Below, piece after piece: positions 49,583 through 58,500 of a DNA stretch of 64,000 nt. Every line of letters starts with the position of its first letter. Within the stretch, counting starts at the first letter, position 1. The position numbers and the translations under genes were made by a program. The notes beneath the pieces are model-generated. The model was not told the origin of the DNA, did not search any database, and was given only the letters and a program-made list of their open reading frames with translations. The stretch is from Bugula neritina (Eukaryota; Animalia; Bryozoa). Location: positions 4,434,662 through 4,498,661 of the forward strand of contig OZ037770.1 in NCBI GenBank assembly GCA_964035545.1, in the 5' to 3' direction.

Positions 49583-52500
49583 GTGAGTGTCTATTAAAAT
49601 AGCAGTGTAAATGTTGAATGAGTGATAATAGATAATATATGCTGAAGCTGAGGCATCTTTTTGCTCAGAATATATTCATACATTATAATATACATCAACA
49701 TAGTAATATGTGCAACATTGTATGTAATCTTTTTATGTCAGTGAGTATTCCAATGTTTTGTAATTGTTATTGTAATTGTTTGTGGATAAACAGATATTGA
49801 GATAAAGAAGTTTGGATTAGTTTCGAGTGGTAAATAATCTTTAATCTGTCTCAAACCATAAGCCAGAGAATTTACTACAAACACACAATAAAGTAATATC
49901 AGTATAAGTGATGCTTAGACACAAAAGGATTATATAACCAAGTACATGTAATTACTATAAGGTATGCTATCATCAACATAATCTGAATGAGAGTATAATT
50001 TTAGACATTAGAGAGTGAAATACTGCCTGTACTGCTATTCGATAGCATTGACTGAATCATGTTTTATGTATATATGGCTAAAAACTGAAGTAATGCACAG
50101 TTTAAAATTTATTATACAAAAGACTACGTTATGCCATCAACTGCAAATATACTATAATAAACATTAGTTAATATATTAACTTACATAGCTTTGTAGAGTG
50201 AGACCTCATGTACTATAAACTAACAGCTAATCTTGCAAAATGAAGCTTCCTCTCTTTACCTACAACATAATATAACTGAAACTCTTTGCTTTTATTTGCG
50301 ACAATATATGTGTTTCCTGCATGTTTTTTGTTAAATACACAAGTCGTAATATATAGTATATATTATTTTGATTAAGTAGACATAAATACATGACACACTT
50401 TATATTACAGCCTATGTCAGCTGACTCAGTTAGAGAAACTAGACATAGGATGGAATCATCTCAACACAGTACCAAAAGTTGTGTCATCACTCACATCACT
50501 TAAAGAGTTGAGTATGTGGAACTGTAAATTATCTACTCTACCTGAGAGGTTTGTGTCACAATATTTCTTCTGTTTTAAACATTCAATATTTCACATCTTT
50601 AATGCTTATCAAGTAGGCTACTGCCAACGTATGTTGAAAACTTCAATATGCATTTTTTGAACTTATCTAATAGCTTGTCTTAATGTGAAAATAATACAGT
50701 TTTTTGGTATGACACTGCATATCATTATATCACAAGAACTTTTTGTAATGGATAATAAAACAGTCATCTGCAGTTTACTGGCAATCGTGGCAACAATCAA
50801 ATCTTTCTAACTGAATGCTTTTTAGCTTCTTGTCCTAATGACTTTGACTATCCATTGCCGGAATGTATTTTGTTTTCTGCATTTTTTACCTGGTTGAGTG
50901 CACCTAAGCAACAATATAGTCTATACAGTGTATATTATTATGACACATTTGACTACATATATCCTATTTTTTATGATTATTACAGTCTATGTCAGCTGAC
51001 TCAGTTAGAGAAACTAAACATGAGAGATAATCATCTCAACACAGTACCAGAAGTTGTGTTATCACTCACATCACTTAAAGAGTTGGATATGAGGAGCTGT
51101 GATTTATCTACTCTACCTGAGCGGTTTGTGGAACACAGTCTTTCTTGTTTCAAACACTCAAAAATTCACATATTGATATAATGCTTACCAAGTAATGTTA
51201 ATTATTATGTCACTATGTATTGTTGAAAAGCATAAAGCTATAAATTAGAATTTTTTTGAGGCTATATGATATTAGAGTTTCTCAAAACTTGAAAATAAAT
51301 ATGTTTCAGTTATCTGGCATTACATTTCCTAATGCTATAAAACCTTCTTCAACAAATAATATAACACCCACTTGTAGCTACAGTTACTAGTATCTTTTTC
51401 CCATTAAATGTTTATTGACCTTCTATATTTTACTTTGAAAATGTCTTGTCGGAATAAATTTGTTTCTTGCATATTATACCTGATTGAATGCACAAGTAGT
51501 GTATACAGTATATACTATTATTCTGATACAGTGGATTACATATATTATGTACTTTATATTACAGTCTATGTCAGCTGACTCAGTTAAAGAAACTAGACAT
51601 AAGATGGAATCCTCTCAACACAGTACCAGAAGTTCTGTCATCACTCACATCACTTAAAGAGTTGAATATGTGGAACTGTGATTTATCTACTCTACCTGAG
51701 AGGTTTGTGTTTCACAACATTTCTTCTGTTTCAAACATTCAATATTTCACATCTTCAATGTTTATTAAGTAGTATTATGCTATGCTATCATATATTGCCA
51801 ACCTATGTTAAAAACTTAAGTGTGCATTTTTTGAACTTATCTAGTAGCTTTTGTCCTAACGTGAAAGTAATACAGCCTATTGGTATGCCATTGTATATCC
51901 TTATATCACAAGAACTTTTTGTAATCGATAATAAAACAGCCATCTGTAGTTTACGTGCAATCATGGAGATAACATAATGCTTTTTAGCTTCTTGTAATAA
52001 CTTCGACTATCCATCGCGGAACGAATTTGTTTTCTGCATTTTTTACCTGTTTGACTGAGCTTGAGGAATATTATAGTCTATACAGTGTATATTATTATGA
52101 TACAGTAGACTACATATATCCTACCCTTTATGATTATTACAGTCTATGTCAGCTGACTCAGTTAGAGAAACTAAACATCGGAAGGAATCCCCTCTACACA
52201 GTACCAGAAGTTGTGTCATCACTCACATCACTTAAAGAGTTGTATATGTGGAACTGTGATTTATCTATTTTACCTGAGAGGTTTGTGGAGTACAGTCTTT
52301 TAGTGTTTCAAATATTCAATAATTGTTGCATTCAATTTGATTCTTTGATATTATACCTGATTGAATGCAGAAGCAGTATATACTATAATTATGTACCGTA
52401 TAGTATAATATAATATTCTGATAGAGCGGACTATATATGTACATTTTCTATACTCTTTATATTTCAGTTTATGTCAGCTGACTCAGTTAGAGAAACTAGA

Positions 52501-55500: not shown

Positions 55501-58500
55501 TCAATGCTGCAAGTATATGAGCCATATAAGAGTCTGTGTCAAAACTCTTGGTCTGCTTGAACGCAATGGCTCGGATATACATGACTTCAGTATCATACAG
55601 TGTGACAGTCAGCATCTCATCAAGCTTCTCTACACTAATGATTGCACTTTCATCAAAAACTGGCTTAAACAGCTCTTCTACCAATATTTTCAGAGCAAGT
55701 ACATCATAGTAAAACTTTTTTATTTAGCATTTAGGGGACACCACCAAAAATCAAATTAAATACTTCTACCCAAACTGGTTTAGCCATTAGTGTTCCAATG
55801 CACCTAACATAGCTCATTAAAGGAGTAGAAATTAAGAGTAAACATTTATGGAAGGGGTATGGTATGAAAATGGTTGGGAGCGGCACTGTTCTAATACATG
55901 TATGTATTACTTCTTTTAGCATAAGATAAGCTCTCATAAAAAACTGCTCACAAATACTATGTTAAGAAGCGATGGCATTGCGCTTTTAATATTTTTGAAC
56001 CCCTTTCTAACTAATTATAAGACATGGCTAAAGTTTTAAAACTGAAAATGACTGTTAAGTTGGCAGCTCAAGAAAACACTTAGATAAGCATGATGATTGG
56101 AAATAATTGCTATTTAGCTCACATGACAATGGCATTGCATTTTAATATTGCAAAACTAACCCCAGTCTTTTATGGTAAAAATATTTGTATTCAACACATA
56201 AATTAATCCTATAAAATATAATTTCATGAATTTAAAACAAACTGATGCAGAAATGCAAAAACATTATAAACACGGCAAGGCTAGGTTAAACTTGAAAAAA
56301 CTAAATGATTAAGGCTCAGCTTAGTTGTTCTTGAGTATTATTTACCTATGACTCAACAATACGCATTATGACGGCAGATGCATCTTTATTACATTAATTT
56401 CTAAAGATTTCAAAGCATTGGAACCTTGAATTTAGCCCTAGTGGATAGGTATATTTGAATCATGAATATTCGTCCGACACCCGGTGGCCATCTTGAATTT
56501 CTCGAGATGCTCAAGAGTAAGAGGTCTACACTGTAGTATAATGTTGTTTACAATTGCTGAGTTGTTTATGTACCTAACAGTAATATGCTAATAATACATA
56601 TTATGCCGTATATTTGTGATTCATTCCTATGTTATATTATAAATATACCTTACACTTATGATCAAGAGAACATCTTTCTATGCTGTCAAGCTGTACACTA
56701 ATTTATACCTTACAATAAAAAGCGTCACGCTACATTATTCCAATGGTCTCATATCAATTATTACCCACGCAAACGTACAACAAACAAGAAACATTACACA
56801 CACCCACCTGGAAAAATTTACCTATAGACCCCATCATTTGAATAATCAGAAGAGAAAAAACTTTTGTCCGGGGTTGCGAACCCGAGTCAAAAGTTCGCAT
56901 TGTTCTGCCTTACTCTATACATATGATTATTACAGTGTATGTCAGCTGACTCAGTTAGAGAAACTATACATACCATTGAATCCTCTCAACACAGTACCAG
57001 AGGTTGTTTCATCACTCATATCACTTAAAGAGTTGGATATGGAGGGCTGTTTATTATCTAATCTTCCTGAAAGGTTTGTAGAGCAGAGTCTTTCTTGTTT
57101 CAAATATTCAATAATTCACATGTTGATATAATGCTTACCAAGTATTGCTAATCAGTATGCCATTCTTTATTGTTGAAAAGCCTAAAGCTATAAATTGGAA
57201 TTTTTTTGATGCTATATGATATTAGAGTTTTTCAAAACTTGAAAAGAATCATGTTTCAATCATCTGGCATAACATTTCCTATTGCTATAAAACCTTCGTC
57301 AACAAATAATATAGCACCCACTTGTAGTTTACTAGTATCTATTTCCCATTAAATGCGAATTAGTCTTCTGTATTTTACTTTGAATATGCCTTGTCGTAAC
57401 AAATTTGTTTGTTGGATATTTTACTTGATTGAATACACAAGTAGTAGATACAGAGTACATACTATTAGCCTGATACAGTGGATTACATGTATTATACACT
57501 TTATATTACGGTCTATGTCAGCTGACTCAGTTAGAGAAACTGCTGTATAGAACAATATTTCTGTATGAAAGTATTACGTGTAGGTTGTGTTTTTATGACA
57601 CTAATTAGCACTTTTCCTACCAAATACACTTATAGTTGTATTGTTGTACTTTTTATAAAAATGAATAAAATCTTATGCATAGTATGCAATATGATACATA
57701 ATTGTAACATAGACTTGTTTTCTGTACAATAAAGATGATCCCTAGGATAAAAGTTATTTACTGTACTATTTCAAGGGATTGCATGGAGATAAACTTGTTT
57801 TAGTCACTGCCACTTAGTATACTACATTATGTGTAATTATTGTTATACTAATATTCGATATATTTATGACAACTAGTAGATCAATTACCTTTAGTTAGTT
57901 CTAATAATATATATATTATATATTATTAGAATACAGAGACTACAGAAGTTACGGGATCTTAACATTTCAGAAAATAGCTTCACCAGTCTACCATCTTCAT
58001 TGTGCGCATTGAGTAATCTGCACACACTAAATATATCCTACAACTGGTCCATGACATCCTTGAACCCTAAGATACTACAGCTAACACATCTTAGTCTCCT
58101 TATAACACAAGATTGCAATGCCTTAACATCTCCTCCACAAGAAGTCTGCGAAAGAGGACTGGATGCTGTGCGACAATACTACACAGACTTGGCTAAAGGT
58201 ACAGGTAGAAATCTTCCATTTGCTACAATAGTCATGCTGGGGAACACAATGGCAGGAAAAAGCAGTCTAATCAGAACATTACAGAGCACTGACAAGAAGA
58301 GAGTTTTAACTGACAGAAGTCCTAATGCAGAGCATGATGAGGCCACAAAAGTGTTTAAGGTGGAAGAGGTGGAGGTAAATGGTACAACACTTCGTTTCAT
58401 AGATATGGGAGGCCAAGAGGTCTACCATATCACATCCCATTTAACACTGAGACAGAATTGTGTACCAGTAATTGTAGTCAACATGGAGCAGTATAATCAG

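Follow-up and report, generated by a model that had tools for sequence, protein, structure and literature searches.

This study deals with a 64,000-nucleotide stretch of the genome of the bryozoan Bugula neritina (assembly GCA_964035545.1, contig OZ037770.1, positions 4,434,662 to 4,498,661 of the forward strand), hereafter the window, and with a candidate receptor gene lying in it on the + strand, in which a start exon is followed by a tandem array of leucine-rich repeat (LRR) cassette exons, by an exon for a Roc-COR GTPase module and by caspase sequences. An initial annotation of this DNA had described the cassettes as a diversifying recognition repertoire and had left room for both germline and somatic shuffling; diversifying selection and germline shuffling among paralogs are supported by our analysis, somatic shuffling is not. 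The immune genetics of bryozoans is almost undescribed, and this gene belongs to a family with dozens of members and some 300 LRR cassettes in all.

The window is AT-rich animal DNA with a G+C content of about 31%. A 20-nt motif taken from the cassette start has eight matches in it, all on the + strand, against a chance expectation of 0.01, and seven of these copies are 138-nt exons with ag immediately before and gtttgt immediately after. Each of the seven is open in one frame only, from exon base 2, and is thereby a phase 2/2 exon whose 45 whole codons plus a split codon encode two 23-residue LRRs; length, phase and donor are those given in the initial annotation. The first repeat has Leu at codons 7, 10, 12 and 17 and Asn at 15, the second Leu at 30, 33 and 40, Leu or Met at 35 and Cys at 38, the ladder position being occupied by Asn in the former and by Cys in the latter. 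Pfam matched the cassette to LRR_4 (1.3e-5) and to LRR_1 (2.8e-5, above the cut-off of this family).

The cassettes follow each other on the + strand with different residues at their variable codons (written first repeat / second repeat). Exon 1 (50411-50548; D.GW / S.WN.K) carries the LRR_4 and LRR_1 matches, exon 2 (50986-51123; N.RD / D.RS.D) ends in CG, so that its junction codon is Arg, and exon 3 (51565-51702; D.RW / N.WN.D) has its ortholog at L052:1589, one of the comparison contigs from two JGI (Joint Genome Institute) samples of B. neritina which are 91-96% identical to the locus. Exon 4 (52143-52280; N.GR / Y.WN.D) is followed by a short intron of 187 nt, exon 5 (52468-52605; D.GG / D.GN.K) bears the replacements P21L and P44S, exon 6 (52892-53029; N.RW / D.GS.E) precedes the long intron described below, and exon 7 (56936-57073; Y.PL / D.EG.L; ortholog at JGI contig L051:1247) is the most divergent copy, with 82-85% identity to the others. 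The residue quartets formerly listed for the two strands correspond exactly to codons 11-14 and 34-37. The eighth motif match (57512-57541, +) has cg-g in place of the acceptor ag and its homology is gone after 30 nt; it is therefore a broken remnant and not an exon, explains why the array had been annotated as ending at 57541, and is the mark of a past deletion or unequal exchange. The same remnant is found at JGI L051:1822. Homology extends to the introns of the array, whose types alternate: identity is 80-85% among introns 1, 3 and 6 and 86% between introns 2 and 7.

Upstream of the array, the first coding exon (49356-49582, +) starts with the ATG at 49356, ends with AA before the donor gtgagt, in phase 2, and encodes a 76-residue N-terminal cap. 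The block 49159-49730 is kept at 83-88% before the first cassette in five paralogous arrays, and the exon is homologous to exon 2 of a gene model of the bryozoan Watersipora subatra, with WYRHSGQP common to both; a Pfam search with this exon gave no match. Downstream, a large exon (57930-59940, +, with an approximate 3' border and a frame open from 57931) encodes the last non-cassette LRRs, the Roc GTPase and a putative COR region. Pfam searches, which like the others were run exon by exon, identified Roc (PF08477) at residues 100-192 with 31.5 bits (2.3e-7) against a cut-off of 27, including the P-loop GNTMAGKSS, and an LRR_14 match in the same exon. With it 44 homologs were retrieved, the closest named one from W. 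subatra; matches to the COR-A family PF16095 occur among them, and a bacterial 'COR domain-containing protein' is among the distant ones. A profile search with the seven cassettes in 1.84 billion representative proteins retrieved other taxa only (amphioxus, bacteria).

Further coding blocks, recognised by Pfam and by conservation among paralogs, extend over 60537-62838 (+, borders approximate) and comprise an acidic linker, the large-subunit part of a caspase (60930-61109 and 61355-61573) and its small-subunit part (62136-62273). The peptidase family PF00656 (Peptidase_C14) was matched at 60936-61112 (1.1e-10) and at 61349-61591 (1.3e-6), with THG and EACSGG motifs. Two paralogous contigs, L056 and L059, conserve these downstream blocks and present the Roc and caspase open reading frames in the same order, which suggests that the caspase is encoded on the same mRNA as Roc-COR. 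Similarly, matching phases, stop-free junctions and the gene model of W. subatra point to a single transcript for the cassettes and the Roc-COR exon. No signal peptide or transmembrane segment was seen in the exons read; the protein is therefore probably cytosolic.

Selection and probable exchange in the cassette family

The cassette motif, allowing up to two mismatches, has 293 matches in the 216-Mb assembly compared with one for a control, most of the cassettes lying on one contig (C6) between 2.5 and 6.3 Mb. We harvested 154 intact cassettes from 21 arrays, which hold 3 to 15 of them each, some arrays being cut by the edge of the extracted DNA. All 154 are 138 nt long and of phase 2/2, the donor is GTTTGT in 140 and the exon ends in AG in 153. 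At the seven most variable codons the same 154 cassettes display 137 different residue patterns. Defective members are rare: one cassette has lost three codons in frame (129 nt) and another lacks the donor (C6:4857556 in array A14; C6:3620004).

Amino-acid variability along the cassette peaks at codons 11, 13 and 14 of the first repeat and at 34, 36, 37 and 39 of the second, with lower values at 16, 18, 42 and 45. Tree-free counting over the 154 cassettes by the Nei-Gojobori method (NG86) gave these seven codons, a class picked after seeing the data, a non-synonymous rate (dN) of 0.62 against an all-codon synonymous rate (dS) of 0.13, a ratio of 4.8 (bootstrap 4.3-5.3). For the twelve x positions of LxxLxLxxN/CxL, which had been fixed beforehand, the ratio was 2.65 (2.4-2.9), and for the framework 0.35. 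Maximum likelihood (ML) under the Goldman-Yang model (GY94) on a common tree returned omega values of 4.92, 2.80 and 0.58 for the seven codons, the twelve x positions and the framework, respectively, with likelihood-ratio tests against omega=1 giving 2dlnL of 73 and 108. The seven-codon ratio is 4.6-6.2 inside each of four intron classes. The signal is therefore no artefact of two old alternating subtypes, and two ancient subtypes as the source of the variability can be rejected. With dN/dS well above 1 by both methods, in the preset class as well, the proposal that differences concentrate at the x positions under diversifying selection has been borne out.

As a neutral yardstick we used 431 cassette pairs in which both flanking introns could be aligned. 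In these pairs the difference amounts to 0.089 in introns and 0.096 at exon synonymous sites and, per non-synonymous site, to 0.371 in the variable codons and 0.038 in the framework. The framework had been described as near-identical even at synonymous sites, which does not hold: the synonymous difference of 0.10-0.12 per site among the seven cassettes is about that of their introns (80-86% identical), and conservation is found in the amino acids of the framework.

The position of the variable residues on the repeat was modelled on an amphioxus array, a natural segment that shares the 46-residue register and was used as a structural stand-in for the bryozoan one. The AlphaFold2 (AF2) model of this segment (pLDDT 89.9) gives every repeat a strand of three residues at motif positions 9-11; codon 11 accordingly belongs to the strand, which codons 13 and 14 directly follow. 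The in-out alternation of LRR strands would place such residues at the solvent, on the concave side of the solenoid. Taken together, the stand-in model and this textbook geometry would put the variable residues on the solvent-facing concave surface.

Several observations bear on how the arrays were built. Outside the window they show the same alternation of intron types; runs of two or three cassettes occur in duplicate, and some blocks are common to different arrays. The nearest exon relative of 111 of the 154 cassettes lies in another array, and mean cassette identity is equal within and between arrays (0.886 and 0.881). For only 38 of 128 cassettes do the two flanking introns agree in their best partner, and the distances of the two variable patches of a cassette are nearly uncorrelated (rho 0.05), short sequences adding noise to this comparison of exon and intron mosaics. 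Such mosaicism, together with the spread of array sizes and the broken eighth copy, is consistent with, rather than proof of, germline unequal crossover and short-tract gene conversion, and the discordant exon and intron genealogies likewise fit the exchange among paralogs envisaged in the initial annotation.

Comparison with orthologs provides a second view of the locus. The JGI contigs L052/L053 and L051 span it from cassette 3 to the Roc-COR exon, with an intron divergence of 0.059, and hold cassettes 3-7, the insertion in intron 6 and the broken remnant in the same order as the window. Differences are confined to introns, some 280 nt being missing from intron 4 of the window and a retroelement being present in intron 2 of the JGI allele. 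In a further pair of orthologs, which has five cassettes and belongs to a different subfamily, the match coordinates are collinear over 10 kb except for one indel of about 400 nt outside the cassettes. Since cassette number and order are equal in both comparisons, turnover must be slow, the arrays being stable at about 6% neutral divergence. An assembly artefact is excluded, as independent contigs reproduce the array. The ortholog dN/dS of 0.22 in the Roc-COR exon and 0.38 in the cassette framework places the gene under constraint and makes a pseudogene unlikely. The initial annotation had itself named invariant cassette number and order across individuals as a finding that would speak against its reading; number and order do vary among paralogous arrays, and at this locus they are invariant, as they are in the other ortholog comparison. 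A side observation concerns the Roc-COR exon (57931-59943 versus L051), whose synonymous difference of 0.186 is three times the 0.059 measured in introns 3, 5, 6 and 7; the AT-rich introns may be subject to a mutation bias, or the counting method may be biased.

A proposed germline-encoded receptor and its alternatives

Starting from what was established here on the anatomy of the exons, the size of the family, the pattern of selection, the mosaic history and the structural stability of the locus between two lineages, we consider it likely that the locus encodes a one-chain intracellular LRR-Roc-COR-caspase receptor whose germline-encoded cassette arm has been multiplied and exchanged while its framework was purified and its surface diversified. 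The sensor arm would be assembled from tandem frame-symmetric 138-nt exons, each one contributing a pair of N-type and C-type 23-residue LRRs. Exon-plus-intron units of about 580 bp would be gained and lost through unequal crossover, and gene conversion would swap sequence within and between the arrays, of which the family has some 20 or more. The solenoid framework would be kept by purifying selection, and selection for diversity would act on seven to eleven solvent-facing codons that lie in the beta-strand of each repeat or closely follow it, the outcome being a large inherited repertoire of differing binding surfaces. The seven cassettes would be spliced into one mRNA, and a ligand bound on the LRR surface would throw the Roc-COR GTPase switch and, through it, the fused caspase. 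Both this binding role and this route of signalling are suggested by the domain layout, and the product may serve as an immune, cell-death or self/non-self receptor.

Several points weigh against this proposal. The strong dN/dS signal comes from comparisons of paralogous cassettes, in which long-kept diversity is not separable from repeated new sweeps, and recombination breaks the single-tree assumption of the ML estimates; the seven-codon class is moreover post hoc, the twelve-position class not. Between orthologs the seven variable codons evolve at a nearly neutral or slightly faster pace: the proportion of non-synonymous differences (pN) is 0.125 compared with 0.109 at synonymous sites of the cassettes (pS) and 0.059 in introns, a difference which, with 11 changes, is not significant against pS. 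Parts of the array may be under relaxed constraint, as cassette 7 is so divergent and cassette 5 has Leu at codon 21 and Ser at codon 44, where Pro stands in 152 and 151 of the 154 cassettes, respectively, and at both codons of the JGI ortholog. The COR-A match of the large exon itself (PF16095, 19.9 bits) is under the cut-off of 35.3. Finally, we infer the use of all seven cassettes from their splice sites, frame and constraint.

The orthologous rate just mentioned, close to the synonymous one, could be read as a sign that the variable codons are simply unconstrained, the framework being the only part that matters in an ordinary repeat protein grown by exon duplication. LRR x positions tolerate change in general, and duplication of LRR-unit exons is common, the gonadotropin receptors being one example. 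Neutrality is nonetheless highly improbable as an explanation of the paralogs, whose variable codons differ by 0.37-0.42 per non-synonymous site, against 0.10-0.12 at synonymous sites and 0.09 in the introns of the same pairs, a roughly fourfold excess. Neutral sites cannot outpace neutral DNA, and gene conversion would homogenise these codons together with their flanks, so that selection for diversity is the only reading that fits, in line with the likelihood-ratio values against omega=1 reported above. A different sort of doubt concerns the source of the diversity. It could be thought that the cassettes are rearranged in body cells, in the manner of VLR or V(D)J genes, to yield cell-specific receptors, a notion fed only by the general analogy of tandem LRR cassettes, by the single broken remnant and by the hypothesis advanced for Ectocarpus (PMC3341825). 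The authors of the brown-algal work later found no somatic recombinants. In B. neritina, a pattern joining a cassette end to a cassette start has no match in the own genome, which thus offers neither retrocopies nor any spliced or rearranged copy. Lamprey VLR germline genes are incomplete, whereas the gene in the window is complete, with a start exon, effector exons and spliceable cassettes each flanked by ag and gt, and three independent assemblies (the window and the two JGI samples) agree in placing cassettes 3-6 first, then the intron transposon, cassette 7 and the remnant. VLR-type assembly is therefore contradicted, we regard somatic rearrangement as extremely improbable, and nothing points to the somatic shuffling once considered for this array.

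It is more tempting to speculate that, besides germline diversity, the cassettes are skipped in combinations by alternative splicing, as in brown-algal ROCO genes, with one gene giving rise to many isoforms. Whichever cassette end is joined to whichever cassette start, the junction codon specifies S, R, N or K; all of these being sense codons, every one of the 128 subsets of these 138-nt, phase 2/2 exons stays in frame, as had been anticipated. Skipping would also spare the solenoid register, each cassette being a whole repeat pair, and the donor GTTTGT of 140 of the 154 cassettes is unlike the usual GTRAGT, the first exon having GTGAGT. Splice variants with different sets of LRR exons are known from Ectocarpus ROCO genes (PMC11378527). 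However, tandem exon duplication yields symmetric exons automatically and does not imply skipping, and the conserved donor may merely have been inherited with each duplication, so that combinatorial splicing is to our mind a possibility to be held only tentatively. Its stronger version, in which skipping is regulated by cell or by challenge and each of the dozens of LRR-Roc-COR-caspase genes thereby gives many isoforms, is unlikely; if true, it would lay a Dscam-like or brown-alga-like layer of diversity over a fast-evolving germline repertoire, in a colonial invertebrate and coupled to a death protease. That arrays of 3-15 cassettes encode a solenoid would argue for their joint use and not for the choice of one per cluster. 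As to the ligand, which the sequence leaves unspecified, bryozoans live in colonies and Bugula has symbionts that are transmitted vertically, and the variable surface might accordingly serve self/non-self recognition between colonies (fusion or rejection) or the control of bacterial symbionts instead of pathogen sensing. Diversifying selection and clustered paralogs typify allorecognition loci as well. Yet a probably cytosolic protein suits intracellular ligands better than recognition at the cell surface, and we give this assignment little credence beside the germline-encoded receptor of broader scope outlined above.

Relationship to known LRR systems

The closest parallel is found in the ROCO genes of the brown algae Ectocarpus and Saccharina, which are built with 72-nt phase-2 exons encoding one LRR each, variable in number among paralogs and accompanied by exon remnants, with positive selection at four sites of the concave face and with splice variants (Zambounis et al. 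2012, PMC3341825; Teng et al. 2024, PMC11378527). Both groups thus have clustered LRR-Roc-COR genes with tandem, equal-sized, symmetric phase-2 exons, and both sets of genes are proposed here or there as immune receptors; in the window and its family we find the equal phase-2 exons, a number and order varying among paralogs, a remnant and selection at few positions, the latter weak between orthologs. The comparison drawn in the initial annotation was hence apt. The systems differ in that each exon encodes two LRRs in 138 nt in the bryozoan against one in 72 nt in the algae, in the fused caspase of the former and in their hosts, an animal and a stramenopile. Alternative splicing is documented in the brown-algal genes; in the bryozoan array, skipping would keep the frame.

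Among animals, the best matches are LRR-Roc-COR proteins of the MFHAS1/MASL1 type, annotated in Branchiostoma as 'malignant fibrous histiocytoma-amplified sequence 1 homolog', which have the same 46-residue double-LRR register of N-type and C-type repeats, with an LTQLE core, followed by Roc-COR. In Branchiostoma lanceolatum, residues 1-1439 of such a protein, array and Roc-COR included, are encoded by a single 4.3-kb exon with no cassettes, and the neighbouring or fused domains are OTU and Death (the next gene has OTU plus Death) in place of the caspase of the bryozoan gene. Since the whole amphioxus array sits in one exon, the cassette organisation is not a general animal feature and, this relative having no introns in its array, the brown-algal and bryozoan exon layouts are most likely convergent. 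Variable residues were seen at similar positions in the amphioxus array.

The gene model of W. subatra (XP_067945196.1) has the homologous first exon, two-LRR exons of phase 2/2 and then a 2031-nt LRR-Roc-COR exon, with 33% identity over Roc-COR. It differs in having only two cassette-type exons, of 141 nt each and unamplified, and the NCBI model ends with no caspase. A model of this layout supports serial splicing and indicates that the module is older than its amplification.

In plant NLRs and other LRR immune receptors it is established that the excess of replacements is confined to the exposed x residues of LxxLxLxx and that the genes form clustered birth-and-death families, as is the case here. 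Plant NLRs have a STAND ATPase where the bryozoan gene has a Roc-COR GTPase; a separate exon for each repeat unit and a fused caspase effector are peculiar to the latter. Tandem cassettes build diversity also in the lamprey VLR genes (LRR modules) and in arthropod Dscam (alternative exons). The VLR cassettes have no splice sites, lie by an incomplete gene and are assembled somatically, in contrast to the complete gene of the window, and Dscam chooses one exon per cluster by mutually exclusive splicing through docking and selector RNA pairing. Bacterial conflict systems of the LRR-AP-GTPase(Roc)-COR-effector type (Kaur et al. 2021, PMC8195603) are likewise single chains, in which fast-evolving N-terminal LRRs are combined with a Roc-COR switch and the C-terminal effector varies; they are prokaryotic and intron-less, and the portions of that text searched contain no caspase-bearing animal version.

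Our literature search found no paper on a bryozoan family of LRR-cassette ROCO-caspase genes. Exon cassettes under diversifying selection have so far been published only for brown algae, and the animal described here would be a second, independent case. A single chain that unites a variable LRR surface with a Roc-COR switch and a caspase has counterparts in the NLRs of plants and animals and in the bacterial conflict systems, but it relies on a GTPase switch and a built-in protease. It also poses the question of whether exon symmetry serves evolutionary reshuffling only or isoform diversity too.

Mobile elements in and around the array

The exceptional length of intron 6 is due to an insertion of about 3.6 kb (53336-56910, borders approximate) and to nothing else, the homology of this intron to introns 1 and 3 ending at about 53335. 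The insertion, which lies outside the coding array, has degenerate inverted ends (53382-53503 and 56486-56882) and an (AT)101 run (53834-54034), and a Pfam search with its open reading frames, the minus strand included, gave no match; it is probably a non-autonomous DNA transposon. As the JGI allele has it too, it predates the separation of the two lineages. Inside this element the JGI allele (L051:549-947) further contains a dispersed repeat of some 300-400 bp, which the window has at 13206-13495 but not at the corresponding place.

At 38500-45400 the window contains a Ty3/gypsy retroelement with an open reading frame at 40053-44279 (+) for an intact 1408-residue pol protein (reverse transcriptase, RNase H and integrase), whose G+C content of 59% compares with about 31% for the genome. 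A similar G+C-rich retroelement occupies intron 2 of the JGI allele (L052:1-1500) and has no counterpart in intron 2 of the window; it is therefore polymorphic and probably has been active recently.

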